Source: Octopus bimaculoides
Taxonomy: Eukaryota
Reading direction: 5' to 3'
DNA length: 64,000 nucleotides
NCBI RefSeq assembly: GCF_001194135.2
Contig: NC_069002.1
Coordinates: forward strand, 36,222,485 to 36,286,484
A model generated the notes under the pieces. That model saw only the letters and a program-made list of their open reading frames with translations. It made no database searches and was not told where the DNA came from. Shown here one piece after another: positions 10,353-60,404 of the stretch. Both the position numbers and the translations under genes were made by a program. Position 1 is the first letter of the stretch; each line of letters starts with the position of its first letter.

Positions 10353-10427
10353 CGTACATACATGCTTACATATATTGCCTATCTTCAATACCTTCTATTG
10401 TCGTTTCTTTATATTCACAGGTGCGTG

Positions 10428-10497
10428 ATGAAAACTATCATTGCTTTCTGTTTCTGCTTTTGCGTACTCATTTCATACGCCTTGTCGTATAACGAAG
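10428..10497 (+). CDS. Agatoxin-like (ICK/knottin) peptide precursor, coding exon 1: signal peptide MKTIIAFCFCFCVLISYALS|YNE
   Basis: Acceptor TTTATATTCACAG at 10420, ATG at 10428, hydrophobic h-region ending in A-L-S, donor G|GTAAGT at 10498; phase 1 matches the next exon. Confidence 0.9.
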
Positions 10498-10764
10498 GTA
10501 AGTACACACAACTCCCTACTACTTTTTTATGTGTATGTGTGCGTGAAAGTGAAAAAGAGAGAGAGAGAAAGCGCTAATCAGAGGAAGGAAGGTATTGCAT
10601 TGCTTCTTTTCAGATTGCCGGATGGGGCTCTATATTCATGTCTTCAGTTTGAACCCCTCTGGGTTTTTGATATATGGAAAGAAAAGTATGTATAATTAAG
10701 GCAAATATTAAATTGCCATGGAGTTGTCTTAAATAATAGTAATAATAATGTTAATAATAATTCT

Positions 10765-10978
10765 TTCTACTGGAAGCACAAGGCTTCAAATATGGGGAAA
10801 GGATTAAGTCGAATTCCATCGACCTCAGTGCGTTACTGGTACTTATTTAATCGACCCTGAAAGGATGAAAGGCAAAGTCGACCTCGGCGGAATTTGAATT
10901 CAGAATGTAAAAACGGACGAAATAGCGCAATGCATTTCACCTGGCGCGCTAACGATTTTGCCACCTCGACGCCTTAAC
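10765..10978 (-). mobile_element. Abundant SINE copy (intron 2)
   Basis: Core motif and head. Confidence 0.85.
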
Positions 10979-11354
10979 AACAACAATAAAAATTATAATA
11001 ATAATAATAATGAGTTATAGAGGAAATAGGCATAAAACCTAGTTTAATGCAATTGCAGAGAGCATTATTACTAGAGAAACTGTGGGCGTTACGCGATATA
11101 TTAAGAAATGCTAGAGACGTTGCGATTACTTAAAATAAACTCAAATAAATTCGACGTTTATAGAATGCAAGGATATAATCTTAAAAGTTATGTTTTAAGA
11201 AATGCAGCACGTAATGAAGACAATACGCCTACACATACGCAAGAAGCTACTACCAAGGCTGTTTCGAACCGTTATCATTACGCCCGTACTGGAGTCTTGT
11301 GCGCCTGAAGACGACTATGAGCCTTTCACAGATATTTGGTAATACCTGTTTTAA

Positions 11355-11742
11355 GGTGCTTTTGACTATTGGTGTGAGCTTCAGAAATAAGGTGGATGAG
11401 GAATTTTTTCCCAACCAAGCTCTTCGATCTTGTGTGATGTGATCTTTGCAGTGTGGGGCCGCGCATTGTCCTGATGAAACATCACTCCTTTTCGATTCAC
11501 TAAAGCGGATAATTTTTTCTTCAAAGCTTGGTTCAAACGCTCTAATTGCTGACAGTAGACTTGAACATTGATTGTTGCATTAGGTGGTAACAATTCAAAG
11601 TGAATTACTCCTTTGCAGTCCCACCAGATAGAGAGAAGAACCTTTTTCCTATGAAGTTCCCTTCTTGGTTGTGGTTGAGCTTTTCCGTTTTACCAAGCCA
11701 CTGTTTACGATGTTTAACATTTCAATAGAAGATCCATTTTTC
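11355..11742 (-). mobile_element. Mariner transposase fragment (DD34D domain)
   Basis: DEKWIFY, IWWDCKGVIHFELL, YCQQLERL, HQDNARPH, HPPY; interrupted by a SINE at 11742. Confidence 0.9.
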
Positions 11743-12267
11743 ATCCTAAGTTCAAATTCCGCAGAGGTCGACTTTGCCTGTCATTCCTTTCGAGATCGAT
11801 CAAATAAGCACCAGTTGAGCAATGGAGTCTTGATGTAATCGATTAGCCTCTTCATGAGAAATTACTGGACTTGTTACAAAATTTGAAACCAATACCTGAT
11901 ACAAAAATATTGTGGATAAGATTCCAAAGTTTGAAAATCTCGGGGAGAAATATTAGTTGAAGTTATTAGTGTGGAACCTGAGAGGGAAAGGGGTGAGAAA
12001 AGTAGAGCCGGATGTGTCGGGTTAACATGAGTGAAGTTGAGTGTTGTGTTAACTTGAGAGAAGATGCTTCGCGACTAACGACTGTAGAAGAGCATGTCAT
12101 TGCAGGAACTGAAGATTATGCATAGAGAGAGGGGGAAGAGAGAGAGAGAGAGAGGATGCAGCACATCTGTGGGGTCTATGGGTCAGAAGTTTTTATAGTG
12201 TGGTGGTGAGTATGTTTATAGGAATGACACATATTTAATAGATGTATTCTCTATTGAGATTATCGTA

Positions 12268-12475
12268 AGGCGGTGAGCTGGCAGAATCGTTAGCAAGCCG
12301 GGCAAAATCATAGCGGCATTTCGCCCGTCGTTACGTTCTGAGTTCAAATTCCGTCGAGGTCGACTTTGCCTTTCATCCTTTCGGTGTCTATAAATTAAGT
12401 ACCAGTTGCGTACTGGGGTCGATCTAATCGACTGGCCACCTCCCTCCAAAATCTCAGGCCCTGTGCATATAGTAG
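12268..12475 (+). mobile_element. Abundant SINE copy, full length (intron 2)
   Basis: Head GGCGGTGAGCTGGCAGAATCG, B box GAGTTCAAATTCC, (ATT)n tail. Confidence 0.85.
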
Positions 12476-14689
12476 AAAGGATTATTATTATTATTATCAT
12501 TATTATTATTATTATTGGGATCGATGTAATCAACTTATCTCCTCTGAAAAAATTTCTGGCCTTGTGCCAAAATTGGAAACCAATACTGGGATTGCTGATC
12601 CTGCAACCGTCATGAAATTCATTCTATCCAACAGACATTAGTGGAATTAAATCAATAAACCAAGAGATCGATATTAGAAGATATATTGAAATCAACAACT
12701 ACATCAGTCCCTGTTGATTTGTTGTACTATAATCATCAGAATCTTTTCAGTGTAGCATTAATATTTTTCTAACTTTCGGACAAGATTTAATGGCGGAAAT
12801 TTAATTGTCGAATAACGAATAATAATTCTCGAGTGACTGAACAGAGCTGATTAAGCCAGATTGAATAAGCTTCTAAAGTGTTACGGTCTTAACCTAAAGT
12901 ATATAATTTACTTCGACTATGTAATTGATATCTATTACTCTGTCACTTGCAATGCTTTCTAGAGCCCTTTCATTAATTTGCAACGAACCTAGGACTAAAT
13001 CCTGGTTCCCTCTCTCCTTCTCTACCCATCTCTGTTTTTCATACTGCATTACTGCGTATTTAGCCAATTAGTTCGGTGTTTGAATGCTTTCTAATTCTGA
13101 GGGTGACACTGAAACGGAAAAAAAATCATTTATTTCTGTTGTTGCTGCAACTACTTCTACTCTTGCAACCGCACCGGTGGCAGACGCTGCTACTATTAAT
13201 ACGGCTGCCCCTATTACTCTATTTCAACTGAAATTACTACTACTGCTGCTGCTGCTGCTACTTCTACTATTGCTGCTGCCAATGATGATGATGGTGACGA
13301 GGATGTCGATTACGGCTGCTATTTAGTTCGTATGGTACAACTTGGTATTGGTCTTGTAGTTTAGCTCCAATTCAACACCGTCTAAGCATTTTTCCCGTTA
13401 AAATTTTATATCACAGAGTAATTTTCAAAGAAGCCAACAGTGGGCATAGGTCAACCTGATGGTTAAAGAGAGGAAGTCTGAACCAATGTACCAATGTTGT
13501 GAATATCGTTACTACTGAAACAACACAACGCATATTTAGTCCTCATTCATATCCTGAATTGCGTCAAATTCCATTAACATTATTTTCATCAAAATTTCTA
13601 GAGATACTTGAATATATAGCATATATTCAGATAGATTAAGTGCGACAGGGTTAGCCTTTTGAATTTCAGAAAGAGCCCGTAAATTATTGTAGTTAATGTA
13701 AGTGGTTAAATATTTCTGAGAGGCATGTGATCCATTCTTCATGTAAGCCTCTCAAAGAGTCAGCATAATACGGTGTATGATAAAGCTAACACTTTGAATT
13801 TGAGGCAGATTCCATTTAGTTCCCGAGCAGTTTCCGAATTTCAACTTCACTCATTAGGTTTGAATCAGCCCTAGGTTATGGCAGAAGATATTTGTCTAAG
13901 ATCTAACGCATTATGATCGAACGTAGAACGTTACGATTCCAAAGCAAGTTTCTTAATCATTTAGACAGTCCCAGAGGCGTAGCAAGGTCAAAGAAACGAG
14001 AAGCGGGAGGCCGTTTCTCATGACGCATATACGACGAGTCACAAAATTTCCTGTTGCTAATTAAGTGACATATACACACAGATCTTTGCTAGCCAGCAAT
14101 AAGAAACTTAGCTACAGCACTGAACATTTCTGCGCTCATTCGACTACCGAAGCCAAAGTAAATTATTATGTTATTCTCGTTCTTCTGCAAATAAATTACA
14201 GATGTTTTCGTTTGTTCGCATCATTTTGAGTGTAAAATACTCGAAGGATTATGTTGTAAGGGAAATATTTACATATTCACTTAGAACAAGGACATTCATC
14301 TTTCCTACGTGTTGGCGCTATTAAGAATTGTAATCATAGTTTCCATTATCTCACTGATAAATCTCTGCCTGCGAGAGAGTGAGAGAGAAAGAGAGGGAGA
14401 TGAGGGAAATACAATAAAAATTAGAAAATGTCAGAAATCACAATATATATTGATCTTGGCTCTATCACTCGTTTGTATAATAAAAGAAAATAGAAATAAA
14501 AGGGGCCAATATGGTGAAGGTTCTACAGAGTTGATCGACTTGCTGGAAATAGCAGTGAAATCTTCCTTAATATCACACCGAACCACTTAATTTGTATCCC
14601 TTGTGATACCTAGATCATGTTTCCCAGCCGTCCGCATATCATACATGAAACACATTCCCATTTATTCGTGAACAAGCAGAATAACTTGA

Positions 14690-15050
14690 GACTGTTCCGG
14701 GTTCAGTCCTACAGCGTGGCAGCTCGGGTCAAGGGAATCCTTGAAAATGGATTTGGTATAGAAACAGAAAGAAGCCAGTCGGATATGTGTGTGTCAGTGT
14801 CCATGTGTGTGTGTGTCCATGTGTGTGTGTGTCCATGTGTGTGTGTTTTGTGTTTGCTCCCAACACACACACCACCTTACAACCGGTGTTATTGTTTACA
14901 TCCCAGTAACTTAGTGGTTTGGCAAAAGAGATCGATCTAATAAGTACCTGCCAGACCTTAAAAAAGCATTGTGCCGATTCGCTCGACTAAAATTCATGAT
15001 GCGGTGCCCCAGTATGGCTGCAGTCTGGTGACTGAAACAAGTGGAAGATT
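14690..15050 (+). mobile_element. SINE of the same family as 48785-49215, 5'-truncated
   Basis: Shared GAAAGAAGCC, GTAACTTAG, CGACTAAA and GACTGAAACAAG blocks. Confidence 0.7.
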
Positions 15051-16367
15051 AAAGATATTAGCCAGGATGTATGAAACAAAGACAAACTGAAAGTATGAGA
15101 ACAATAGTAGACGTTTAGGACAAGCTTATAAGAAAGCATTGGACAAGGAAAGGGTTGAGGAAAAAGAAAACAATCTGACCATAAGAAAATGCATTTCTTG
15201 ATGGACTATGTTTGAAGAAAATACAAAATGAGATTTATCGTAACTAGACTGTCCTTTGATTATAGAATTATTCTATTAAAAAAGACTGGTGCTTAACGAA
15301 AACTAAAAACACCACCAATAAAAACAACGAAACTATAACGACAAAACAAACGTGGGGCTTACAACAAACCAACGCTTAAAAATAAACGAAAAAATGGCTG
15401 AAATTAAAATTACATTTTTCATTCTTTTATTATGATTTGTGTATTTATTAATTCAGCAAATGAAATATGGAAAAAAAACAAAAAAAAACAAAATAAAATT
15501 ATTCATTATATTTATGTCAGAATAGCAAGTAGTGTAGTATAATGCCGTTTGTAGACAAGCCATTACTGGTTTATCTTAGAGCAAAACTCTAAGTTCGTGT
15601 TAAGAATTTTAGATACTACACGATTATCTTTTATCACTATTTCACCTTGAAGATAATCTCTCAATGAATTCCGTCGTGAAAGACGGCATTAAAGGATTAT
15701 GAAGAAGGATTAAATACGACTATATTTGTAATTAACATGCTTATTACATTTTCTTTTTTTCCTTTCCTTTCATTGGATGCAGTCATCAGATCCAAGACAA
15801 GACTGCTTTGCAGTTGCTATGATTGATGCTGTTGTTATTGTTGCTTGTTGTTGCAGTTGTCGTCTTCTTCGTTTTGCTGTTGCTCAGCTTTGAGGACATT
15901 TCCGATCGAATATATTGATAAAAGGCGATTCCAAGCTTTTATTTAGTTGTAGTAATAATGGTTGTCTCTCGAACTCCGAGAAAGGCAGTTCTGAAATGTC
16001 TTACTGAACAACCTGCACGGATGATGTGTTTCTAGCGATCAAAGGTTTATGTTGTACATTAGTCCATTCCTTCTATGATATATACGTTGCCAGAAATATG
16101 GCACAGTGTGTCACTAGCAAGATGTGGGCATGATCGCAGAGCAACGTAAGATGGGGTGTTTTTGCACAAGAACACAATGCTAAGGAAGAAATTATAAGAA
16201 AAATTTATTTTCCTTAAAGGAACAAATATTCAAAAATAAAGATCATTGTCGAATGATTGAGATAAATTTTTGCGTTTCAATAATTTTTCTATGTTTTTAC
16301 TCATTCTATAATTTGATGAACATGTAGCACTATGTAAGGCGACTCAAGAAATCTCTAGTGAAACTTT

Positions 16368-16423
16368 TTATTGATGTACCCGAAGAGACCCAGAACGGGT
16401 CGAAACATGTCTTGCACCAACAA
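16368..16423 (+). ncRNA. Degenerate hammerhead ribozyme motif
   Basis: CCGAAGA (U4C), GACCC/GGGTC 5-bp stem II, GAAAC-at-GTC; stem I imperfect (about 9 of 12 pairs). Confidence 0.45.
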
Positions 16424-16545
16424 AGTCTATTACATATTCCATCTCCTATTTCATTAATACTATATATATATATATGTATATATATTCATTTAAAATGCAG
16501 AGATGCCTATAATAGGACATCTACTCGCTAGAAATAGCAGCAAAA

Positions 16546-16809
16546 GACTATATACCACAAAAATTAGGGATAATTTCGAAAGGAAATGAAAAATAAAAAC
16601 TTTTACCAATCTATATTCTGTACCATGGTTTCAACTCGTGCTTCATATGTTGTCTGGTCATTTCTGCTGACGATAGTCCGACCTTGTAAGATATATAATC
16701 TTTATCTTACTAAAATTGGCTTGAAACCATGGTACAGAATATAGATTGGTAAAAGTTTTTATTTTTCATTTCTTTTCGAAATTATCCCTAATTTTTGTGG
16801 TATCTAGTC
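16546..16809. repeat. Long inverted repeat (89-bp arms, 86-bp spacer)
   Basis: 16546-16634 versus the reverse complement of 16721-16809 shows 2 mismatches; the right arm runs into an N gap. Confidence 0.9.
16662..16739 (+). ncRNA. Type I hammerhead ribozyme motif (U.U at 10.1/11.1)
   Basis: UUCUG-CUGACGA-(stem II with an 8-bp inner hairpin GTAAGATA/TATCTTAC)-GAAACC-au-GGUA-CAGAA; palindromic stem III ACCAUGGU. Confidence 0.6.
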
Positions 16810-16929
16810 NNNNNNNNNNNNNNNNNNNNNNNNNNNNNNNNNNNNNNNNNNNNNNNNNNNNNNNNNNNNNNNNNNNNNNNNNNNNNNNNNNNNNNNNNNN
16901 NNNNNNNNNNNNNNNNNNNNNNNNNNNNN
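16810..16929. other. Assembly gap
   Basis: Run of N. Confidence 1.
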
Positions 16930-17032
16930 ACAGTCTATTGACTGTTTTTTTACTCTCGCTAGACCACTGGTGGTAAATAAAATTTCTAAAATTTTTTTGC
17001 TACCCTATAATTTATTAATAATGATAATTAAT

Positions 17033-17066
<34 letters not shown>

Positions 17067-18312
17067 TTAGCAGAAGTAATAGTAACTCTTACTAATGCAC
17101 TTATCAACACTCGAAACTCTCGGACCTCGAGTCACTCTGTTACTTCTGCTAAATATTAATAAAAACATACATATACTCATATTTTGAATTTTATTTTTCC
17201 TGAAGTACTTCGTTTTTTTTTGTTTTTGTTTTTCTTTTGCCATCTCGTTCTCCTATTTCTGTTCTGCACTCGACTAACGTTTCGTTCTGAAACGTATGTA
17301 CCTTTAGGTCTCCACCAGCTTATTGGTCTCGCAGTGCCCAAGCGAAATAAATATATCTGTGATTATATATAAAGTAAATTTGGATTTAGTAAAATCTTGG
17401 CGCATCGTTTACGCAGAATTTCAATACGAATACGCGGTTAGCTACACATTAAGTCTGATATTTAATGTTGTGATTCCATAATATATAATTCATAGATGCG
17501 GGGAAAACCAAATAAATATCACTGACAGAATGAGTTGGTGTCTGTTTTTATAGAGGAAAATAGATGACAACCTAATCCGTAATATCAGTTTCAATCGTTT
17601 CACAAGCATTCGTATTCTGACTACGTTGTATATGAATATTTATGCGTGGGAAATAACACAAGATTTGTATAAATTATGTATTGTTCAAATGGTGAGAAAT
17701 GTCAACCACTTATTATAGTCGGTTATAATACATTGTATGCGAAAAACAACTTTCCGCTGTTTATATATCCTCAAGAACAACAACAAAAAATAATATTCCT
17801 AGTATTATTATTATCATTATTATTATTATTATTATTGCTGCTGCTATGTTTCCTGCGGAATACATCGGACGTGTTTTCGAACGCTTCAAGAAAGATTAGT
17901 GTAAAACATTTGTTTACACCAGTTTGGTAACGCCTTTTCGTTTTACATTTCGCTCCAAGTTGTTAAAAGAGATACCAGGAATCTGCTTGTCGTTTTCTGT
18001 GTTTTTTTTTTTCCCCCTTGCGAGGATATATTGGGCCCACTAATTAGGTTCGGTGGGTGTTTAATCATACACAGTTCAACAAGATGGCGGAGCGCATCTT
18101 GAAAGAGTTAAGAGAAACGTGCCCCTTCTAGAAGTCTAGTGACTGCTGAAGATTTCCCCCCACCTTTCCTCAGTTACTGAAAACAATACAAGAGAGGGGG
18201 AGCAAAAAAGGGAGGGAGAAAAGTAGAAAGTTGACCTGGCAGCAGCAGCAGCAGTGGTAACATCGACAACAGCAGAGGGAGCAGGGACAACAACAGCGGC
18301 AGTAGTCGTGGT

Positions 18313-18709
18313 GGTTGTTGTTGTTGTTGTTGGCACTCCGTCGCTTACGACGACGAGGGTTCCAGTTGATCCGATCAACGGAACAGCCTGCTCGTGAAAT
18401 TAACGTGCAAGCGGCTGAGCACTCCACAGACACGTGTACCCTTAACGTAGTTCTTGGGGATATTCAGCGTGACACAGTGTGACAAGGGTGACCCCTTTGA
18501 AACACAGGCACAACAGAAACAGGAAGTAAGAGTGAGAGAACGTTGTGGTGGAAGAGTACAGCAGGGTTCGTCACCATCCCCTGCCGGAGCCTCGTGGAGC
18601 TTTAGGTGTTTTCGGTCAATAAACACTCACAACGCCCGGTGTGGCAATCGAAACCGCGATCCTATGACCGCGAGTCTGCTGCCCTAACCACTGGGCCATT
18701 GTGCCTCCA
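18313..18709 (-). mobile_element. Full-length tRNA-derived SINE with TSD
   Basis: tRNA-like head (A box TGGCCCAGTGG, B-box-like GGTTTCGATTGCC), (CAA)n tail, TSD CAGTAGT(C/A)GTGGT at 18300-18312 and 18710-18722. Confidence 0.9.
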
Positions 18710-19236
18710 CAGTAGTAGTGGTACAACAACGCGAGAAAGAGCAACAGGAGCAGCAGCAGCAGCGGTGGAGATGACAGTAGTAGTAGTAGAGATAGCGTTT
18801 TCGTTAATAATGCAACGGATTTTAGCGGCAAAATAATCCTACAATTGAAGGCGGAGTGGAAGAAAATAGCTGTGACGCTAGCAGTGAGAGTAGCAACGGT
18901 GTAAGTGGCCACAACACCCTCATCACCACCAACATCCCCAGCAGGAGTAGTAACAACAACAACAGCAACGACGACGACAACAAAAACAAAAGGTTTGCTG
19001 ATGAAACAAACAGAAAGAGAGAAATTTTTGCCATCGCAGTCGATGCTAAAACACAGGAACAGTCAAAAGCGAAAGACATCATTAAATTTGAGTGGGGTAA
19101 GGCTGCAATTCTCGTACCTCCCGAAAAAAAAACAGAGGCAAAAGATAAGACAGTATGCTACAGATGCGTTTCACGCAAAAGATAAGGCCCTCAGAGGAAT
19201 GTTAATAGATGTGGCCTGTGGCCCATATACAGAGAG

Positions 19237-19428
19237 GGAGACAGTTTGCCAGCAATAGGTTTACTGGCATTTCGTCAGTCGTTGTGCTCTGAGTTCGAAT
19301 TCCACTGCGATCGACTTTGCCTTCATTCTTTCAGAGACGTTAAAATAAGTAACAGTTGAACACTGGGTTCAATCTCATCGACTTACACCCTCCCCCGATA
19401 ATGCTGGCCTTGTTCCAAATTTTGAAAC
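19237..19428 (+). mobile_element. Abundant SINE copy
   Basis: Core motif and (ATT)n tail. Confidence 0.75.
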
Positions 19429-19454
19429 CATTATTATTATTATTATTATTATTA

Positions 19455-19935
19455 TTGAGTGAGAGAGCAGTGCATACCAACAAAGTGACACTTGGGTAAA
19501 ATATACAAGGCCCAGTATACCCATCATGACTACCCGCCTGACAAGGGTACACCAGGCACATGCATCACAACCGTATGTGCCTGAAAGGGTGATCTCATAT
19601 CAAGATGAACAGCGCATGACGTTGTAGGTGGGTCCCAATTAGAATTTTCTTCAGGTTGAGTAGCCCATCCTGCTCAATGGTTCCCTGAATGATGTTTGTT
19701 GAAAGATGAACAAATCACCCATGTTTCCAAAGGTGAATTATTCAAACCCCAAAGAATTCCTCTCAAGACATGGCTATGATGCTCCCCCACTACTTCTGCT
19801 CATGATCAGAGATGCACATATCGTCAGCCACTAATGGACATACTCAACTAGTTAAGGTCAAACAATTGCCAAGCAAATCTGTAGTATGGAGCAGAATATT
19901 TGCTGTGGCCCATCTTTTTATACCAAAACAAAATT
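19455..19935 (-). mobile_element. Unclassified interspersed repeat (partial second copy at 21368-21505)
   Basis: Shared GCTGACGATATGTGCATCTCTGATCA.GAGCAGAAGTAGT and TTGGTATAAAAAGATG blocks. Confidence 0.6.
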
Positions 19936-21419
19936 TTGTACATGATAACACTTCCAATCAATTCAGATCAGAAGCAATGAGAGCCACTGCTTGGTATGCA
20001 TCAGGGTATCCATATAGAGCTACAGCCTGGTACTGCACCTGGGCATTATTATTATTATTATTATATATTGCACATCACTCCCATGAGATTGTTGTTTTCC
20101 ATATTGCTACATATTAGACAAATTATATATTAGACATTTGTTATTGTTACAGGGATAAAGTGACGGGGACCTTAGGGAGTTGGTTAGATTTTCTCCATCT
20201 GTAGCCCTAAGGGCAAATTGGATCTGATTTAGTAAACTCGCCCCTCAGATTTTGTTTCAAAAAGAAAGATGGTGGACGAGGATTATTCATCCGCTGTAAA
20301 GAACAGCCAGTTCTCCGCAGATCAGAACAGCCAAATTGTAAAAGTCAGAGACTGCAGTAGCAGTGACAATAACAAGTGCAACAGCACTACACTACTACTA
20401 GAAGTAGTAGTAGTAGTAGTAGTAGAAGAAGAAGTAGTAGTAGTAGAAGAAGAAGTAGTAGTAGTAGAAGAAGAAGTAGTAGTAGTAGTAGAGATCGGAA
20501 AGAGCTCATTTAATTGCCAACTATTTGTAGTGTGATGAAGAATGAATCTTCAATATTGGCGACTCCAAAAGACGAAGATTTTCGACGCCGTCGCAGTCAA
20601 AACCATGCTGAAGAGAGCCATGTTCGGAAAGAAAACAATTTGCAGACATAAGATATATATATTTACTTGATTTCCATTCCGTCACTCTATATTTATCTCC
20701 ATTTCTCAGTTTTACATTTTGTTTATTACAATTTATATCTCTTTCCTTCTCCCTTTCTCTCCCCATCTTTTAGCTTCCTGTTTTTTTTTTCTTCTTTTCT
20801 TTCACTCTCTACCTATTTCCAATATTTTAAAGTCTTCTATTTGCTTTGTTTTAAAACCTAATTAGGGTAACCTTAATACCACATTGACAAAAGAAGACGC
20901 TGCTCAGATATATTTCTTCCAAACAGAGGATCTAATTGAATTACAGAACTTAATTCGCAATGGGTAATATAGTCGTGTATTGAATATTAATGAGTGATTG
21001 AGCACACAACGACAACAACAACAATAATAATAATAGTAGTAGTAGTCGCAGCTCTCTGTGCCTAGGGTATGCGCTGTGGTTTGTTGTGGTTCTCTGTACT
21101 GAAAGTGTTTTACGTAGGATGTGCGCAGTGCCTAGTGGTGCTATTTTCTCTATTTTATATATACTTGTAAGTCCTGGTGATTTTGTTATTTATTTGTCTG
21201 AATGTTTTCTTTTTATCAAACCTAATGCGCCAACTATAATAGGAATTGTTTCTGTTTTTAGGCTCCACATTCGAGTTACCTCTATTTCCAGATGTTTGTA
21301 TTTTAAAGTTTAGAAAGCATTTTTTCTTGGTTATCTCGGACAAATAATAAAAATAATAATAATAATAATGCTGACGATATGTGCATCTCTGATCACGAGC
21401 AGAAGTAGTGGGGGAGCAG

Positions 21420-21429
21420 NNNNNNNNNN
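21420..21429. other. Assembly gap
   Basis: Run of N. Confidence 1.
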
Positions 21430-21712
21430 GGCTGACGATATGTGCATCTCTGATCACGAGCAGAAGTAGTAGGGGAACACGTTTTGTCTTGGTATAAAAA
21501 GATGTGTAGGGATTAACGGTTCAGCATGATAAAATGTTAACGATGCATAAATACGTACACAACCATACACACAGGCACCAATACACGCACATTAGCAAAC
21601 ATACACACATACATGTGGGGGGGGGGTGAATGTATGTAACAATTAATATATATATATATATATATATAAATTTAGTAAATGGAGTAAAACGCATATGTTA
21701 AATGAATTCTTT

Positions 21713-21783
21713 TATTTCCAACATGTTTCGAAGATTACAAATTATACTTTCCATAGGAATATGTATTTCTCTCCAGGGAAATA
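21713..21783 (-). ncRNA. Degenerate hammerhead ribozyme motif
   Basis: Minus strand UAUUUCC-CUGGAGA (A6G)-long stem II-GAAAC-au-GUU-GGAAAUA; perfect 7-bp stem I. Confidence 0.45.
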
Positions 21784-22070
21784 CATAGAAACCAGCTTAA
21801 CCTTAAGACATTTTATATATATATATTTGTGGCCAATAATTAACGACTTAGCATTCTAGTTTACATTTTGGTCCGGAGAAGCGAGTGTCTGTATCTCACG
21901 CTTTCGCAGTCCCTTTGTGTTCTTAGCTGAGAAAACTCAAATCCGTTATCGCGCCTAACATCACCACGTGACTGCGTTGTGTTGCAAGAGCCCAGGCCAG
22001 ATGCTTAATTTGATGATATACTTAGTCATTTCCGCCCTCAGGTACTCATACACTACATACAAACCATACC

Positions 22071-22427
22071 TCTGGAGGCGCAATGGCTCAGTGGTTAGGG
22101 CAGCGGACTCGCGGTTTCGATTCCCAGACCGGGCGTTGTGAGCGAAAACACCTTAAGCTCCACGAGGCTCCGGCAGGGGGTGGTGGCGAACCTTGTTGTA
22201 TTCTTTAATCACAACTTTCTCTCACTCTTTCTTCCTGTTTCTGTTGTGCCTGTAATTCAAAGGGTCAGCCTTGTCACACTCTATGTTACGCTGAATATCC
22301 CCGAAAACTACGTTAAGGGTACACGTGTCTGTGGAGTGCTCAGCCACTTGCACGTTAATTTCATGAGCAGGCTGTTCCGTTGATCGGATCAACTGGAACC
22401 CTCGACGTCGTAAGCGACGGAGTGCCA
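22071..22427 (+). mobile_element. Full-length tRNA-derived SINE (same family) with a perfect 12-bp TSD
   Basis: TGGCTCAGTGG head; TSD ACAAACCATACC at 22059-22070 and 22428-22439; inverted relative to 18313-18709. Confidence 0.9.
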
Positions 22428-23179
22428 ACAAACCATACCCATTGGTTTCTCCGTTTCTGACTGAACGGGTGAAAAATCGTCTGGCGTGGGATGGAGCTTG
22501 ATATTGCAAGCAAGCATCGTGACTGATCGCCAGATTTGACTGACTCGGAACCAAGTTTCAACATTTAATTTGTTGCATTGTTGTATATAATTAGATATAC
22601 ATTCATATAAACGTCGCCATTATTATCCGGGTAGATATTTTGATATGTCTTGGTCACGAAAGCCAAGCATATTAGCTTTGAATTCATTAGGTTATGGAGT
22701 ATTCAATCTAGTTCAACAAACTGATAACAGTGGGAGAGAAAGTGTATGTATGTGTGTGCGTGCTTGCATGTGTATATGTGTATGTAGTGATAGCGGAGTT
22801 GATTCGAGAAAACTACATTCAGCAACGTGACATCTCATATCACATTAATGCCATCAATCAAAGCTACTCCAAGCTATACACCACGTCTGCTTGTATTTTA
22901 CATGTTCATATTATTTCTCTGAATATAAACAATATTTATAGAAAAACTAAAAGTGGAAATAAAATGAAAAATAACAAAAAAGCAAAAAGAAAATTCAGAT
23001 AAATTGTTTAATGCGAGACATTCGATAATATTCCATTAGGTCTCAGTCTTCAATCAACGTAGCAAATTATTAGTCTTTCAGCATAATTCACCTTATATAA
23101 CCGTAAACCTTCATGAAAATTATTACTATTAACGTTAACATAATTGTTGTTGTCGCTATCACAATTTCATTATTAGTTG

Positions 23180-23390
23180 TAGCAGCCAAGTCGGCGAACT
23201 TGCAGAATCCTTAACACGTAGGAAATAAAAACAGCTTAATGGCATTTCTGAGTTCAACTTTCAATATGAGCGACTCTTTCTTACATCATTTTGAGGTCGA
23301 TGAATTAAAGTACCAGTTGAGTACTGGGGTCACTGTAAACCACTAGCCCGCTCCCACCAAAATTCAAGCCTTGTGCCTATAGTAGAAATT
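23180..23390 (+). mobile_element. Abundant SINE copy, degenerate
   Basis: Head and GTACCAGTTGAGTACTGGGGTC block. Confidence 0.7.
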
Positions 23391-23409
23391 ATTATTATTT
23401 GTTGTATTT

Positions 23410-24290
23410 CTTCAAATGTTTTGTGAAAAGGCCTTGTGCAAATTCGCAAGGGGACTTGGCATTGGCGCTGAATTAGATGAAGAATCTGAAACCCCTGTCA
23501 CCAAACGATCAAAACGGATCAAGCCGATTGCAAAAAAGAACGGACAGAAACTAATTGAGGAGCGGTGGAACCAAAAGCCCCTGCACGGACAGTATATTCT
23601 TCAAAGTCGAAATGCTGATGTAGATCGAGTAGCAACCCATCAGTGACTGACAAGTTCAGGATTGAAAGCAGAGAATGAAGGTTTTAAATTGGCGGCACAA
23701 GATTAAAACTTGCTTACCAAAAACTATAAGGCTAACGTTCTTCAAACCGGTTCTAACCTTAAATGTATATTCTGCGTCACATTCGACGAAACAAGAGACC
23801 ATTTCGTTTCGGGATGTCTTATACTGACACCAAACGAAAACAAAAATAGCCACGACAAGGTAGAACAGTATTTACAAAGGAAAATATTTAAGCACAACAA
23901 AGTCAGCATTTCTGCTTACGGGTAATGAACAGTATCCTGAGCCAATCATTGAAGGTAAAAATGTCACTATCCACTGGGATTTTCCAGTCAACACGGACAG
24001 AACGATCCAGGCTAATTGACGAGACATCATTATTAAAGACAGGGAAGGAAATACTTCTAGACTAATAGATGTAAGTTTTCCCACTGATAAACCATATCTG
24101 TAAATTGATAAGAACATGGAAATTGAAATTTAAAGAATGTGGCATCTTAAAGCAAGAACTGTTCCTGTTATTATAGGTGCTGTAGGTATGATAAAAATGG
24201 GATGTCAGAAACATCTATACAATATCCCAGGAGAACCATGTCTCAGAGAAATCCAAAAGATTGTGCTGACAAGCATTGCCCCAAAGGGTT
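23410..24290 (+). mobile_element. 3' part of an RLE-type LINE (R4/Dong-like), pseudogenised
   Basis: KPLHGQY, GLKAENEGFKLAAQD, CIFC..ET.DH..SGC zinc knuckle, SHDKV (RHD), WDFPVNTDRTIQAN-RDIII, LIDVSFP, VPVIIGAVG. Confidence 0.85.
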
Positions 24291-24311
24291 TATACACACA
24301 AATATATGCAT

Positions 24312-24359
<48 letters not shown>

Positions 24360-24444
24360 CCAGCGCGCTAACGACTCAGCCAGCTCGCTACCTTAACAAC
24401 AGCAACAACAACAATAATAGTAATATAATGGCTTCAAATGTTGG

Positions 24445-24600
24445 CACAAGATCAGCAATTTTGGTGGACGTGTGGAGTCGATTACATCGACCTCAGTGTT
24501 CAACTGGTACTTTTTCTAATCGACCCCGAAAGGATGAAAGGCAAAGTCGACCTTAACAGTATTTGAATTAAAAAATTAAAATTGGACAAAATGCCACTAA
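24445..24600 (-). mobile_element. Abundant SINE copy
   Basis: Core motif. Confidence 0.75.
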
Positions 24601-24920
24601 GAATTTTTCCCAATGTGATTATAACAACAATAACAACAATGATAATAATAATGATAACAATTAATTGGCTTCAAGGGATGCAAAAGCATTTCGGTCAACC
24701 CAAAGAGAAGGCCTGTGGGCATTTATTTAAACACGTGTAAACAATAAAAAGACGTAATCAGTCTCCTTCATTTTCTTTCCAAGCATTCTACAGATATATC
24801 TACAACCTTCTCTGGTTATTGAAGTATTCCTGGAGTGTACATTCATATATTGCTATACATACTTTGGTAAATCGAAAACTAATCGCATATGTTTTTTTGT
24901 TTTTTTTTAATCTATTCCAG

Positions 24921-24975
24921 ATGATCTTATCGCCGATGACTTGTTACAAGGTGACTACGAAGGTTTGGATAAAAG
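24921..24975 (+). CDS. Agatoxin-like precursor, coding exon 2: acidic propeptide (D)DLIADDLLQGDYEGLDK(R)
   Basis: Poly-T tract plus TTCCAG acceptor, AG|GTAAGA donor at 24976; phase 1 in and phase 2 out; the junction creates a KR dibasic site. Confidence 0.9.
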
Positions 24976-25288
24976 GTAAGAAGTATATTCGTCATGAAAT
25001 TGTGTAGGGGGAATATAATGTTGTTAATTTTATTGTTTTTTTTTCCCTTGGGAGACAAATATTCAAGGAGGTTTATCATTAAAATTTGCTGGCGGCCAAC
25101 TATAAAGGCGTTGTTGGTGGATTCAACGATGGTGTATCGAAATTTTGAACGGATCTACTTGAAAACCTATTAAATCTTCATCCAATAAGACGGGTTTTAT
25201 TTAGAAACCAGGCATTTGATAACGCACCTGTTGAATGTGTGTCATTATATATATGTGTGTGTGTGTGTGTGTGTTTGTGAGTGTGTAT

Positions 25289-25369
25289 NNNNNNNNNNNN
25301 NNNNNNNNNNNNNNNNNNNNNNNNNNNNNNNNNNNNNNNNNNNNNNNNNNNNNNNNNNNNNNNNNNNNN
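25289..25369. other. Assembly gap
   Basis: Run of N inside a (TG)n tract. Confidence 1.
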
Positions 25370-25437
<68 letters not shown>

Positions 25438-25822
25438 TGACAGACTATAGTAGAAGACATTTGTCCAAGGTGCCACACGGTGGAACTGGACCCAGAACCA
25501 TGTGGTTGAGAAGCAATCTTCTTACCACACAGCCGCGCCTGTACACACACACATATATATATATACACATCTATATGTATGTAAATGCGTCTATATATGT
25601 ATATATATGTGTGTGTGTGTCTGTAAGTGTACGTGTGTGTGTGTGCACCTCTACATAAAAACACTGATTAATATACGTACGCACATAAAAATAACTGATA
25701 ATTCCATTAGAATTATGGTTTTCAACATTATAACTACATAGACATATATGTTCTTGTGTTCTTATCTATTTCTCTCATCTGATTTGATTTGATTTTTTGT
25801 TTATACTTTATTTTTTTCACAG

Positions 25823-25894
25823 GGATTCTTCTGATGTAGATCGTCGTGCTGTTCGTTATGATAAATTGAGCCGATTTTTACGAATCAATAACCG
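25823..25894 (+). CDS. Agatoxin-like precursor, coding exon 3: DSSDVDRRAVRYDKLSRFLRINN(R)
   Basis: TTTTTTTCACAG acceptor, CG|GTAAGC donor at 25895; 72 nt, phase 2-2, open in the frame required by both neighbours. Confidence 0.88.
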
Positions 25895-26899
25895 GTAAGC
25901 ATTTCACATAATTTTTCCCTTAAATAAACGATAAGATATTTAATAGGTTTAAAAAACAGAACGTGCCTCACTATCACCACCACGCTCTTTCCCTTCCTAA
26001 ACTACTCTTTCTCTTCCTCATCATGTATTATCGACAAGTTTTAATTGTATTAAACACGATGACGGACGTTCCTTATGTAGAGTTCCACCATAAATGCTTT
26101 TAAGAACATAAGTAATCAAAAAATCACGCTATATCATCCGTATCTTCATTATGGTTTTTGGAAGTAATTGCCAGGGTTCGTCTTCCCATGCATCATTCAC
26201 CGGAAAATAACAAAACGGTGTTTAATTCATATGCGATGAGGCCTTGCAAGTGAGTTACTAGAAGCATCAATGTATGCAATCTGGATTTCGTTTCAGTTGA
26301 GGCGTTCATATATTCGTTTATCTTTTCGCTTTATTTTCGGTTGCCGAGAAATTTTCTGCTTTTTAAAAAAGGATTTTATCCTTTATTTATATATACTGTT
26401 CAGTATCTACGCGTTGAATAAAATTTATCTTTCTACTTGTTCTACAATACATTTCAACGCTCCGAAAACAAACTTGTTTGTTTACATACGACGTAGTGCG
26501 TGCGTGCGTGCGTGCGTGTGTGTGTGTGTGTGTGTAATGGTCGAGGAAAAGTAATAAAGAGAAACCAGAAGAAACTCCCTAACAAAGGCGTTATTAGAAT
26601 AAAGTCTGAGAAGAAATGGAATCTCTCCTTAACGTTTCAGACACTATTCGTTTTTCAGGGGAAAGTTGGTGGAATGGTGTAAAAGAAAGGTGTAGAGTGC
26701 AAGTAGCGGAGAAAGGTGCACAGGTTGGCCACAGTCAGTGGGGAGAGAGAAAGAGAAAGAAGAGTGAGAAGTATTAGTATGAAGGAAAAGAGAAAAAAGA
26801 CGAAGAAGATAAGTGAACACAAGAGATTGGCCGCAGTGTTACGAGTGAGAAAAAAACTTGAGAGAACAAAATTACATATGAGAAAACAGAAGAAAGAAC

Positions 26900-27990
26900 A
26901 CAACAGTGCCTAGTGATGTCGTTTGTTCTCGTGTGTGCTTATACATCTTCATATCTGGTTATGCATATAATTATTCCATATTTCACTATATTCTAAGATT
27001 TTCAACTCTGGTTATATTCTTTCGATGTTCATATTTGGTGACATTCTTGCCTATTCATCTTTGTATGGTTGTTATTCAGTTTTGATGATAATTCTCAATC
27101 GCTGGTTATATTCTTAGATCTTCATCTTTTCTCATATTCTTTGTTATTTAGCTTCGCTTATATTATAGGTGGGTCATCTTTGTTTATTTTCCGAATTCCT
27201 TGTCTTTGTCTCAATCCATCAATATTTCATATTTATTTGTGTTCTTGGTTCATCATCTTTGGCTCTGTTATTCATAATATTTTCTTATAGTTTTGGTTCT
27301 TCAGATTTGTTTTGACACTTCGTAGTTCATATTTTGCTATATTGTTAGTTTTTCATCGAAGGATAGTTATTCGTATTTGGTTTTGCTTTTCTGCATTTAT
27401 GTTTTTATTTTATACACAGTTTTACATATTTAGTATTATATTGTTCTTTTATATTTGATAATATCAGCTGTTTGTTTACGATTATCTTCCTCGTTATTTA
27501 TATTTCTTCTTATTCTTTGTTAGCAATAAATGGTTATATACTTAGCTTTTTTCATCTTCGAATACATTAACAGTACTTCACCTTTGATAATATTGTCATT
27601 TCTGAACTTTAATTTTCTTCTATTTTCTTCATCTTTATACATTTTGTTGCAGTCTACTTCAGCCGTCTAGTGTGATCGTCTTCCTCTTTGGGACAACTGT
27701 TTATATTTTTATGTCCGTTCCGATATTTGGCTCTCTATTTATGTTTCTTAGTATATTCAGCAATCCTGTTTTGTTTACAGATTTTATCTTGCTTCGCGAT
27801 ACGTTGATGCGTTCGTCATCGGTTATTGAATTCTTCTACCTTTATCAATGTGTGTATTTTATTGCCTCTTTGATATATCTAGATTTAAGCTTCGTTCCCC
27901 ATTTTTCTTTATCTAGCCGAATTTTATATTTTGATTTCATTCTTAGTGTTCATGTTCTCACATCTTTCTTGAAAATATTGAAGTAACCAG
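26900..27990 (-). mobile_element. Strongly T-skewed tract, possibly a decayed LINE ORF on the minus strand
   Basis: Marked strand asymmetry; Lys-rich minus-strand translation with many stops; NIGTD resembles the GSDH motif at the end of APE endonuclease domains. Confidence 0.3.
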
Positions 27991-28061
27991 GAGATTATTA
28001 TTAAAACAAAGTGAATACAGTCCATACCCGACTTCCTGGCACCCGCTCAAAATACTGACTT

Positions 28062-28265
28062 CAAATTTTAGCACAAGGCGAGCAGTTTTGCGGGAAGGAG
28101 GAGGTTGAATGCATTGACCCCAGTGTTCAGCTGATGCTTATTTTATCGACCCTGAAAGATGAGAGGCAAAGTCGACCACGGCGGAATTAGAACCCAGAGC
28201 GTAGAGGCGGAGGAAATGCCAAGTATTTTCCCGGCGCACTAACGGTTCTGCCTGTTCGCAGCCCT
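28062..28265 (-). mobile_element. Abundant SINE copy (intron between the last two coding exons)
   Basis: Core motif. Confidence 0.75.
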
Positions 28266-29362
28266 TGAAATACTGATTTCTCTGAACATGTTAAACTGAA
28301 CAAAATTTAGTGTTTAATTGAAATATTCCAATCTGGGACTCAATAAAGGCAAAATGGTGGGTTTGTCCTTCTTCCAGTATGCGGAATTATGCATGTATGT
28401 AATTAGATGTGAAAAATATTTACTTTTATGTATAGGCACCTTTATCAAGGAACATGGATGGCATTTGGTAAAGAGAACAAGCTAATTAAATTAATTACTT
28501 TATGAATAATTACTTAACTCTGATGTAAACAACATTGTACATTACTTCACTGATTGAGCTAAACATCACAGTACTAGTACACACACGTACACTCTCTCAC
28601 ACACACACACACATACATATATACATACATATATGACGATGCGGGCAAATGAAAGAACATGGCACTAAACACATTTTATATGAGTTACATGTATTATTTA
28701 ATAACAATTTCCCTCGATTCCATGCAGTATCATGCGGTTCCTCGTTGCCCATGATGCCACGCAGTGGGACTGTAAAAAAAAATCCATGGTTTCAAAGCAG
28801 CTTCTTAACCACACAGCTTTGTCTTGCCTAAAACAATTGTACCTATAAGACATGTGCTGTAACCTGAGACCATTCATTCATGGTATCCAGAGGTTGTTAT
28901 TCTACGGTAGCTCTCCTAAAATTTTACTTGCCGAATACTTTCTGTAAATTAATAATAATTGAGTTGGTAAGATGTTATTGTCCTGTAAAGATATTTCAAT
29001 ACAAGGTTATTATTAGTTCAAATATGTTTGGGGCATATTTGAACCCGCAAGAAAGCCATTCATTGCATTTTGTCATACAGAACATTTCTTGCAGTATCAC
29101 GTCTTATTGCTGCCAACCGGTAATTGGTTTGCAATCAAACGCCGGTTAGCGCTACCCGTCATTTTACGATGACAGGAATATCACGAGAGTGCGACAATCT
29201 CTCTTATCAACCCCAAGGATATATAAACTGGTAGTAACCTTGTATTCATTCACATCACCGCTTCGTGCTACCAACCCGTAAATATTGTTATGTTTTTATC
29301 CTGTAAAACTGTTTTTTTTTTCTTTTAATATTTTCTTTCTATTTGTTTCGTTTTATTTACAG

Positions 29363-29516
29363 AGGAAAAAGTAAGTCACACAAGAACAGCTGCTCAAAAT
29401 GGCAAATGGCGTGCACGACCAGCTCGAAGAGACCAGACGCTCGTTGCTGTTCAGGCCTTGTCTGTAAATGTAACATCTGGGGAGCGAACTGCCGGTGTGA
29501 TGATACTCTTGGATAG
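29363..29516 (+). CDS. Agatoxin-like precursor, terminal coding exon: GKSKSHKNSCSKWQMACTTSSKRPDARCCSGLVCKCNIWGANCRCDDTLG*
   Basis: TTTTATTTACAG acceptor; Cys framework C-x6-C-x10-CC-x4-C-x-C-x6-C-x-C; CKCNIWGANCRC matches the CxCN(L/I)WGxNCRC hallmark of arthropod agatoxin-like peptides; TAG at 29514-29516 follows a terminal Gly. Confidence 0.93.
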
Positions 29517-34703: not shown

Positions 34704-34739
<36 letters not shown>

Positions 34740-60362: not shown

Positions 60363-60393
<31 letters not shown>

Positions 60394-60404
60394 CATATAT
60401 ATAA

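Follow-up and report, generated by a model that had tools for sequence, protein, structure and literature searches.

We found that the spliced gene in this window, the 64-kb stretch of Octopus bimaculoides DNA that we analysed, is most probably one of two cephalopod precursors of the CCWamide/agatoxin-like peptide (ALP) family, namely the paralogue with an aliphatic C-terminal amide, and that it encodes an endogenous signalling peptide rather than a lineage-specific venom innovation; we assign this reading a probability of about 0.85. The gene is already known as a catalogued O. bimaculoides member of the family: it is the same gene as Ocbimv22001854 of an older gene model, which is listed in the CCWamide block of Supplementary Material 26 of Thiel et al. 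2021 (PMC8557429). Spiralian CCWamides, this gene included, were described in that study as orthologues of arthropod ALPs, so the initial annotation, which had presented ALPs as neuroendocrine peptides of insects, was out of date on their distribution. Its remark that the function and receptor of ALPs are unclear still holds for the family in the literature.

The window matches O. bimaculoides CM046622.1 (GCA_001194135.2) at 100% identity, in agreement with the cephalopod origin first proposed. All four coding pieces lie at the positions given by the initial annotation and, like the other features located below, on the plus strand. Joined, they form a 351-nt coding sequence that translates into exactly the 116 residues it had predicted, through GT-AG introns of phases 1, 2 and 2, with a polypyrimidine tract preceding every splice acceptor. 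Coding exon 1 (10428-10497; ATG...ACGAAG|gtaagt, phase 1) carries Met1-Glu23 and the first base of the Asp24 codon, and is followed by a 14.4-kb intron (10498-24920) with a low-complexity trinucleotide-repeat region. Coding exon 2 (24921-24975; ttccag|ATGATC...TAAAAG|gtaaga, phase 2) completes the Asp24 codon and breaks off two bases into that of Arg42. Beyond intron 2 (24976-25822), coding exon 3 (25823-25894; tcacag|GGATTC...TAACCG|gtaagc, phase 2) completes Arg42 and stops two bases into the Arg66 codon. Intron 3 (25895-29362) splits the Arg66 codon (CG|A) just 5' of the last-exon peptide, and coding exon 4 (29363-29516; ttacag|AGGAAA...GGATAG) completes that codon with one base and then encodes Gly67-Gly116 and the TAG stop. 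The gene had been described as invisible among the open reading frames, which is plausible given that its longest piece, exon 4, is a 57-aa TTG-started frame below the usual 60-aa cut-off.

The transcript may extend beyond these exons on both sides. A possible 3' splice acceptor at 10419-10420 (cacAG|GTGCGTG), 7 nt before the ATG, could receive an upstream 5'-UTR exon; O. vulgaris isoform P0004 has an N-terminal extension ending ...EDN-R-CV-MKT that needs splicing into the equivalent of this site, and the first exon of the O. vulgaris gene model begins some 64.7 kb 5' of its ATG. Downstream, the sequence suggests a probable 3' UTR running from 29517 to a provisional end at 30030, with AATAAA at 29801, 29953 and 30006. 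Identity to O. vulgaris reaches 91% across 29211-30175, exceeding every other listed non-coding block of roughly 0.8 kb or longer.

Several comparisons place the encoded protein in the CCWamide/ALP family. Residues 76-114 match Pfam Toxin_9 with 25.1 bits, above the cut-off of 21.3 (E=2.3e-5). When 1.84 billion representatives were searched with an HMM, the hits included a named CCWamide precursor, that of Platynereis (E=6.9e-5, covering profile positions 5-113 of 117), together with many molluscan and ALP-like sequences (E=5e-8 to 1e-4), the ALP-like ones matching at E=5e-8 to 1e-6. The homology search that had been suggested for the cysteine domain thus assigns it to this family. In family alignments all 8 cysteines are invariant and Asn103 is nearly so, as are Trp105, Asn108 and Arg110 in one of the alignments. 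Intron 3 is the diagnostic phase-2 intron of the family, conserved at the last-exon peptide in all CCWamide/ALP genes analysed by Thiel et al. 2021 (PMC8557429), and both the second octopus gene and the Argonauta gene are interrupted at that position in the same phase, again within a CG|A codon.

We found two family genes in Octopus, both belonging to groups present across molluscan classes. The canonical paralogue, LOC118768477 (O. sinensis XP_036370989.1, identical in sequence to 'octopusVulgaris.32202'), lies at another locus, ends in Trp-Gly-Gly and falls in a Trp-type clade with Platynereis CCWamide in 42/60 bootstraps. The window gene lies outside this clade and groups with non-Trp molluscan forms, although bootstrapping does not recover these non-Trp forms as a clade. 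The two octopus genes share the family and the 8-Cys framework, and in both a phase-1 intron follows the signal peptide and a phase-2 CG|A intron precedes the knot, but LOC118768477 has only 92 aa and 3 exons and ends ...CRCVNKLWGG. According to Thiel et al. 2021 (PMC8557429), peptides of the family typically end in an aromatic residue, whereas the window gene's peptide ends in Leu, and we conclude from its sequence that it is the second, non-Trp type with a predicted C-terminal Leu-amide.

The precursor has the secreted prepropeptide layout with an 8-Cys knot of the agatoxin-like family that the initial annotation had recognized, as Pfam, the profile search, alignments and the predicted fold all show. 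Exon 1 encodes a signal peptide with the hydrophobic core IIAFCFCFCVLISYAL (mean Kyte-Doolittle hydropathy 2.67 over residues 4-19; AF2 helix predicted at residues 2-19), and the -3/-1 rule points to probable cleavage after Ala-Leu-Ser20. Exon 2 encodes an acidic propeptide, DDLIADDLLQGDYEGLDK(R), and exon 3 encodes DSSDVD-RR-AVRYDKLSRFLRINN(R), with dibasic sites at Lys41-Arg42 and Arg49-Arg50. The predicted mature peptide in exon 4, GKSKSHKNSC...CRCDDTL, is followed by Gly116 as amide donor. Its cystine-knot domain (29391-29498) spans Cys76-Cys111 (Cys 76, 83, 94, 95, 100, 102, 109 and 111) and bears the motif CKCNIWGANCRC; the C-C-CC-CxC-CxC pattern has a single match across six frames of the window. 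AF2 modelled the knot region at pLDDT 70-87, and the best Foldseek matches in the PDB were spider inhibitor-cystine-knot (ICK) toxins: 6ax2 (prob 0.97, rmsd 2.4 A, 42% identity) and 1kqh (prob 0.99, TM 0.75).

These features suggest a route from gene to signal. The four exons would be spliced into an mRNA for the 116-aa prepropeptide, a gene model shown by identical annotated proteins and orthologous mRNA, and the signal peptide (about residues 1-20) would direct the product into the secretory pathway. Prohormone convertases could then cut at Lys41-Arg42 and Arg49-Arg50 and, by homology with the intron-split basic site of the family, at Arg66, which would free a basic peptide roughly 49 residues long (Gly67-Leu115). 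Because the window gene has no dibasic site directly before the knot, the mature N terminus is uncertain, and a 65-residue form beginning at Ala51 is an alternative product. The eight cysteines are predicted to form a four-disulfide ICK fold, in keeping with the best structural matches, and peptidylglycine alpha-amidating monooxygenase would use Gly116 to produce the Leu-amide. Conservation and the behaviour of its relatives suggest that the peptide is released as an endogenous signal, neuronal or endocrine, acting on a putative receptor.

In the gastropod Berghia, a CCWamide is broadly and strongly expressed in neurons, but expression of the oyster CCWamide gene is centred on the digestive gland and only weak in the visceral ganglia, and a neuronal source of the signal is therefore not guaranteed. 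We considered it unlikely, although the best placed of the alternatives, that the product is a non-neuronal secreted peptide such as a gut or digestive-gland factor or a host-defence knottin. The strongly basic character of the predicted mature peptide (pI ~9, net charge +6) would suit such a role, and the search with the predicted fold also touches the antimicrobial knottin tachystatin A. However, the precursor has the classic prohormone features of dibasic sites and a C-terminal Gly amidation signal, its Berghia relative is broadly neuronal, and ALPs are neuroendocrine in insects in what is cited from Sturm et al. 2016. Furthermore, immune effectors rarely combine an absence of protein change between species with deep conservation of motifs.

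Consistent with an endogenous signalling peptide, the gene is under strong purifying selection and is conserved like a hormone gene. The O. bimaculoides and O. vulgaris proteins are identical; the coding sequences differ at 6 synonymous and 0 non-synonymous positions (dS 0.089), with one difference in exon 1, two in exon 2, three in exon 4 and 100% nucleotide identity in exon 3. Between the two Octopus species, exons are 96-100% identical and the alignable blocks of surrounding intron DNA 82-91%. Against a decapodiform mRNA, with synonymous sites saturated, the knot had a dN of 0.16 and the signal peptide one of 0.50, making these the slowest- and fastest-evolving parts of the precursor, respectively. 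Decapodiforms also keep LIADDLL and EGL-KR in exon 2, RYDKLS(R/K)FLR-NNR in exon 3 and a nearly identical C-terminal half of the knot. By contrast, the last-exon peptide of the Argonauta hians counterpart is much more divergent (32% identity), so constraint is not uniform among octopods.

This pattern bears on whether the paralogue was recruited as a venom or saliva toxin, expressed in the posterior salivary gland and, like spider ICK toxins, targeting the ion channels of prey. Octopods are venomous, and in typical venom peptides such as conotoxins the signal peptide evolves slowly and the mature peptide fast. The Toxin_9 match, the resemblance of sequence and predicted fold to spider insecticidal ICK toxins, the less canonical nature of this second paralogue and the Argonauta combination of a conserved signal peptide with a divergent mature peptide all favour recruitment, and the literature documents that spider venom ICK toxins were recruited secondarily from the neuropeptide of this family. 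Nevertheless, purifying selection, a slow knot with a fast signal peptide (the reverse of the venom pattern) and a single copy in the window argue against it, and we consider it very improbable. Neither the window nor the corresponding loci of O. vulgaris and Argonauta showed tandem expansion; pygmy squid has exactly the same CKCNIWGANCRCDDT(L/I)G motif; genes of the non-Trp type are also present in non-venomous molluscs, namely chitons, bivalves, aplacophorans and one monoplacophoran; and a full-text literature search found no report of a cystine-knot peptide from cephalopod salivary glands. Where the initial annotation had proposed either the neuropeptide orthologue or a divergent paralogue recruited as a toxin, the gene is indeed a second, non-Trp paralogue, with the canonical form elsewhere, but recruitment is not borne out.

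The gene is real, far beyond chance, and the annotations of the O. vulgaris and O. bimaculoides assemblies arrived independently at an identical 116-aa protein. Its exons touch none of the three assembly gaps, all of which are intronic: 16810-16929 and 21420-21429 lie inside intron 1, and 25289-25369 lies in a (TG)n microsatellite of intron 2, 313 nt past exon 2 and 453 nt ahead of exon 3. The orthologous O. vulgaris interval is N-free and collinear, and its four exons give the identical 116-aa product. Additionally, a decapodiform Logan mRNA contig (990 nt, ORF 46-399) contains an uninterrupted orthologue, colinear across all three junctions, with one 1-aa indel in the signal peptide relative to the octopus protein. 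Therefore, no coding exon is hidden in the gaps. An uninterrupted orthologous frame is also present in Idiosepius notoides transcriptome sequence. Ocbimv22001854 differs in having two unconserved extra cassette exons, which we located by translation at 18713-18764 and 18945-19096 (GT-AG; 204 nt and 68 aa in total) within CAG/CAA/AAC repeat DNA of intron 1. Apart from trinucleotide repeats, the O. vulgaris intron contains no sequence orthologous to them. The O. vulgaris protein lacks them, as do both decapodiform sequences, from the Logan mRNA and from Idiosepius, and we regard the two exons as most likely spurious. A chance joining of fragments or a non-functional relic, which short exons spread over 19 kb with three gaps in the introns and the two additional exons of the earlier model might suggest, is effectively refuted by the identical proteins in two species, the orthologous mRNA, the conservation of exons over introns with only synonymous changes, and the four-exon structure kept in Argonauta.

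The closest known system is that of the spiralian CCWamide precursors (Platynereis dumerilii AHB62368.1 and molluscan, nemertean, brachiopod and phoronid sequences; Thiel et al. 2021, PMC8557429). Like these, the window gene encodes a signal peptide, a poorly conserved acidic propeptide, a basic site and a C-terminal 8-Cys peptide with the same Cys framework and CKCN(L/I/F)W..NC(R/K)C core, and it shares the C-terminal Gly amidation signal and a phase-2 intron that interrupts the basic codon preceding the peptide. It differs in its predicted Leu-amide in place of the eponymous Trp-amide, in lacking a dibasic site immediately before the knot and two canonical-type motifs, P-W-(S/T) after Cys2 and QNC, and in an extra phase-2 intron within Arg42 that splits the propeptide. 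Arthropod ALPs (Sturm et al. 2016; Christie et al. 2020), which Thiel et al. 2021 (PMC8557429) identify as orthologous, have the same precursor layout, 8 Cys, CKCNLW.TNCRC core and diagnostic intron, but belong to another phylum and have a longer tail after the last Cys and another C-terminal motif; for ALP and CCWamide alike, no receptor is established in the literature. The spider Toxin_9 venom ICK toxins (U8-agatoxin; Magi3, 6ax2; Tbo-IT2, 7ay8; purotoxin-1, 2kgu) share the cystine-knot framework and predicted fold, with Magi3 about 40% identical to the octopus peptide over about 40 residues. By contrast, these toxins are products of chelicerate venom glands, whereas the octopus gene shows hormone-like conservation.

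A six-frame search placed all four pieces of the gene on the + strand, and the 351-nt exon join gave exactly the 116-residue translation described in the initial annotation, whose four-exon model is correct and was carefully made. Exon 1 (10428–10497) encodes residues 1–23, including the signal peptide, and ends in phase 1 at the 5′-side donor ACGAAG/gtaagt (a slash marks the boundary). Exon 2 (24921–24975) runs from ttccag/ATGATC to TAAAAG/gtaaga and exon 3 (25823–25894) from tcacag/GGATTC to TAACCG/gtaagc, both ending in phase 2. Exon 4 (29363–29516), which opens at ttacag/AGGAAA and closes with TAG, encodes residues 67–116, the mature peptide with all eight knot cysteines. A pyrimidine tract lies ahead of each acceptor. 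The junction between exons 3 and 4 splits the codon of Arg66 (CG/A, phase 2), nine residues ahead of the first cysteine, and an additional phase-2 intron interrupts Arg42 (AG/G). Arg66 stands between Asn65 and Gly67 and is thus an isolated basic residue, not one of a di- or tribasic site.

The window contains four runs of N, three of which fall within the gene span: two in intron 1 (16810–16929 and a 10-N run at 21420–21429) and one in intron 2 (25289–25369), inside a (TG)n microsatellite. The exons border none of these gaps, and the corresponding O. vulgaris interval is free of N, collinear and carries the same four exons. Together with a colinear cephalopod mRNA-like contig, these observations indicate that the gaps conceal no coding sequence and that the reading frame is unbroken. 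We also observed a motif of about 40 nt (GCTGACGATATGTGCATCTCTGATCACGAGCAGAAGTAGT.GGGG) on both sides of the 10-N gap (window 21380–21470), and this identical flanking sequence points to duplication at the join or to a repeat collapsed during assembly. A 747-N gap at 7734–8480, 2 kb upstream of the start codon, would mask a promoter or 5′-UTR exon located there; the O. vulgaris gene model starts about 64.7 kb upstream of the ATG, beyond the equivalent of the window. A second annotated O. vulgaris isoform (P0004, 102 residues) starts in an upstream exon and continues from exon 3 into a different terminal exon far away (106856–106900 of the O. vulgaris locus, L002), giving a product without the knot; its specific exons were not found in the O. 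bimaculoides window. None of the four gap-free ORFs of at least 150 residues in the rest of the window matched a Pfam family, and the same held for ORFs of that length within its 30–64 kb part. No Rfam family was found in the window and no other gene was recognised there. Three blocks of the window (34001–36000, 42001–44000 and 60001–62000) have a strong negative GC skew of −0.19 to −0.25 and are probably strand-asymmetric repeats or microsatellites.

The earlier suggestion of a probable cephalopod genome was borne out by 100% identity to Octopus bimaculoides CM046622.1 (GCA_001194135.2) in all ungapped blocks, the offset being 427. The exact 116-residue protein is recorded in that assembly and in O. 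vulgaris GCA_951406725, where it is annotated as 'Hypothetical predicted protein'. The gene is under purifying selection: the exons of the two species differ at 6 of 351 positions, all six changes being synonymous and none non-synonymous (S = 71.3, N = 276.7, dS = 0.089, dN = 0), and the alignable intron blocks are 82–91% identical. A 990-nt Logan contig from run SRR24189504 (L001) contains an uninterrupted ORF for a 117-residue orthologue with 61% identity and is colinear with the octopus protein across all three junctions. This mRNA is decapodiform-like, judging from its similarity to Idiosepius, and the precursor of the pygmy squid Idiosepius notoides in literature data is nearly identical to its product; a literature search for the run accession returned nothing. 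The Argonauta hians gene (L004, 10001–17166) likewise has four exons with the same intron phases. Its protein (P0005) has a near-identical signal peptide, a last-exon peptide that is 32% identical to that of Octopus, and a C terminus (...CRCDMRLFGG) with an aromatic residue near the end. P0005 may reflect unusually fast evolution or a different paralogue, and the flanks align too poorly to decide between the two. A second signal-peptide-like match in the same locus (17467–17511), 300 nt downstream of the gene, proved to be T-rich low-complexity DNA and not a duplicate.

[quoted passage not shown] In the CCWamide block of Supplementary Material 26 of Thiel et al. 2021 (PMC8557429), the gene appears as 'octopusBimaculoides.Ocbimv22001854', adjoining the Idiosepius orthologue. 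This older model, of 184 residues, differs from the 116-residue protein in an insert of 68 residues following residue 23, encoded by two segments of intron 1 (18713–18764 and 18945–19096) that have GT–AG boundaries, preserve the frame and lie in CAG/CAA/AAC repeat DNA. Apart from trinucleotide repeats, nothing in the O. vulgaris intron corresponds to these segments, and the insert is absent from all orthologous proteins. The 116-residue model is therefore the better one, and the insert exons are probably an annotation artefact. In O. sinensis, the RefSeq model of the orthologue (LOC115232215; P0002, 163 residues), on a 72-kb contig, has exons 2–4 identical in protein sequence, and an unrelated 70-residue N terminus replaces the signal-peptide exon; its first exon is probably mis-annotated. 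The 116-residue model should supersede both. A literature search for Ocbimv22001854 found nothing. The 'octopusBimaculoides.Ocbimv...' identifiers probably stem from De Oliveira et al. 2019, in whose main text the term CCWamide does not occur.

Assignment of the protein to the agatoxin-like family, as first proposed, was upheld by a domain match, profile hits to named members, eight invariant cysteines and a diagnostic intron. Residues 76–114 match Pfam PF02819 (Toxin_9, 'Spider toxin') with 25.1 bits (E = 2.3e-5), exceeding the gathering score, which is 21.3. When 1.84 billion representative proteins were searched exhaustively with a profile, 17 matched at E ≤ 0.001, including arthropod ALP-like sequences (E = 5e-8), the octopus Trp-type paralogue (E = 1.4e-5), a named Platynereis dumerilii 'CCWamide neuropeptide precursor' (E = 6.9e-5) and several molluscan proteins. 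Few further sequences came from a word-indexed homologue search that used a 14-sequence profile. The eight cysteines of the C-C-CC-CxC-CxC pattern show no variation across alignments of 14, 17 and 36 family members, and the CKCN(L/I)W..NCRC core shows hardly any. The precursor has the layout of the family, with a signal peptide, a propeptide, a basic site and one C-terminal cysteine-rich peptide within its 116 residues. Thiel et al. 2021 (PMC8557429) reported that in all CCWamide/ALP genes examined the first exon encodes the signal peptide and the last exon the peptide itself, with a phase-2 intron between the second and third bases of a basic codon immediately ahead of the mature peptide. We found the CG/A phase-2 intron of the window's gene at the same position in the octopus Trp-type paralogue (L005) and in the Argonauta gene. 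The same study identifies spiralian CCWamides as orthologues of arthropod ALPs, and the description of ALPs as insect peptides is thus out of date.

Two aromatic traits of the family fared differently. The aromatic residue that members often have between the sixth and seventh cysteines is present as Trp105 in CKCNIWGANCRC and is nearly invariant in one family alignment. A C-terminal amidated aromatic residue, typical of the family but not universal, is absent, with leucine in its place. In the published CCWamide collection, the window's gene stands alongside a dozen further molluscan sequences, the majority ending in Leu/Ile/Met/Val plus Gly, which indicates that the C-terminal aromatic residue divides two subtypes and does not define the family.

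The knot-domain alignment of 36 family members also resolved two molluscan types. The Trp type has P-W-(S/T) after the second cysteine, usually QNC, and a C terminus of (L/I/M/V)-W-Gly; at the end of most non-Trp sequences stands Leu/Ile/Met/Val and then Gly. Both were found in chitons, aplacophorans, a monoplacophoran, bivalves and cephalopods, and the sampled gastropods and scaphopod had one type each. A second cephalopod pair is listed in Supplementary Material 26 of Thiel et al. 2021 (PMC8557429), consisting of 'octopusVulgaris.32202' and Idiosepius 305035. The former has the same sequence as O. sinensis XP_036370989.1, with the C terminus ...CRCVNKLWGG. The O. sinensis gene LOC118768477 (locus L005) has three exons; its first intron, in phase 1, follows the signal peptide, as does that of the window's gene, and its second, in phase 2 (CG/A), falls within H-R-R/R-K directly before the knot. 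Relative to this gene, the window's gene has the extra phase-2 intron in Arg42 and, at Arg66, a single basic residue in place of a dibasic site. The canonical octopus CCWamide (P0012, on CM016860.1) ends in ...KLWGG, where most molluscan orthologues have LWG, alone or with a following Arg or Lys; if amidated in the usual way, P0012 would give a Trp-Gly-amide and not a Trp-amide.

In a neighbour-joining tree, 42 of 60 bootstraps united the Trp type, including the Platynereis CCWamide and the other octopus gene, as a clade. The window's gene grouped with its decapodiform orthologues in all 60, positioned among the non-Trp sequences. A non-Trp molluscan clade was not recovered (0 of 60 bootstraps with Argonauta included) because the domain, at about 45 residues, is too short. 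The most economical reading of this short alignment is that an old duplication gave rise to the two types and that the window's gene would be the cephalopod non-Trp paralogue. Cephalopods, like most molluscan classes, have one paralogue of the Trp type and another of the non-Trp type, the latter with a Leu/Ile-amide in cephalopods, and receptor searches should treat the two peptides apart.

The precursor begins with a hydrophobic stretch at residues 4–19 (mean Kyte–Doolittle hydropathy 2.67), modelled by AlphaFold2 as a helix over residues 2–19, followed by an acidic propeptide with 11 Asp/Glu within residues 21–50. The propeptide contains dibasic sites at Lys41-Arg42 and Arg49-Arg50, and a further basic site lies at Arg66, where a conserved basic linker, RYDKLS(R/K)FLR-NNR, leads to the last-exon peptide. 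The knot spans residues 76–111 (Cys76, 83, 94, 95, 100, 102, 109 and 111). The C terminus of this eight-cysteine peptide, ...CRCDDTL-G, retains the amidation signal, with leucine as the residue to be modified. We propose that the signal peptide is removed near Ser20, that convertases would cleave at KR42 and RR50, and that Arg66 would be cleaved as well, by homology with the intron-split basic site of the family. The predicted product is a basic peptide of 49 residues (Gly67–Leu115) with four disulfides in its knot, in which Gly116 would be converted to a Leu-amide (predicted mass 5357.35 Da). Given the strong conservation of linker residues 53–66, the mature form may instead be longer, at 65 residues (Ala51–Leu115; 7359.49 Da). 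N-terminally trimmed forms would have monoisotopic masses of 5172.24, 4957.11 and 4604.92 Da; all these masses assume four disulfides and a C-terminal amide. A further candidate, the amidated linker fragment AVRYDKLSRFLRINNR-amide, which an ...R-G-K site might yield, was rejected because the glycine is not conserved in decapodiforms, which have NNRAR. The mature peptide would be released as an endogenous signalling peptide acting on a receptor. In other molluscs, a CCWamide of the gastropod Berghia is abundant and broad in neurons, and the digestive gland is the main site of CCWamide expression in the oyster. The question of the family's function and receptor is no more testable through this locus than before.

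The initial annotation had offered a choice between the neuropeptide orthologue and a divergent paralogue recruited as a toxin. The answer lies elsewhere: octopus has two genes of the family, each in a group found across molluscan classes, and the window's gene is probably the second, non-Trp one. Recruitment into venom is not supported. In venom-peptide superfamilies such as conotoxins, the signal peptide is conserved and the mature peptide hypervariable. The octopus gene shows the reverse: compared with the decapodiform L001 sequence, for which synonymous sites are saturated and overall dN is 0.25, the knot (dN 0.16) evolved more slowly than the signal peptide (dN 0.50). The mature peptide is not accelerated between the two Octopus species either, given the absence of non-synonymous changes there. 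Nor did a tandem expansion show: a six-frame scan for the cysteine framework, made in search of tandem paralogues, found a single knot exon in the window and likewise in each of three other loci, those of O. vulgaris, of Argonauta and of the paralogue, and the remaining CxC...CxC matches were all (TG)n microsatellites. [quoted passage not shown] A dedicated toxin is thus disfavoured by the gene's conservation, copy number and phylogenetic spread, and the conservation pattern lends no support to an agatoxin-like knottin in octopus venom. We regard as highly improbable a more elaborate proposal, in which the non-Trp paralogue would belong to an ancient signalling system of molluscs, distinct and with a receptor to itself, and the octopod knottin would also leave the posterior salivary gland, unmodified, as a prey-directed channel modulator.

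AlphaFold2, run on a 17-sequence alignment, modelled the knot with two short strands at a pLDDT of 70–87 (67 overall), a moderate confidence. The best Foldseek matches in the PDB were spider inhibitor cystine-knot (ICK) toxins (6ax2, probability 0.97; 1kqh, probability 0.99 and target-normalised TM score 0.75), with E-values of about 0.08 that are weak because the domain is small, at about 40 residues. By sequence, the nearest solved structures are also spider ICK toxins, namely purotoxin-1, Mu-hexatoxin-Mg2a (Magi3 entry, 6ax2) and Tbo-IT2, whereas the omega-agatoxins match the octopus protein weakly.
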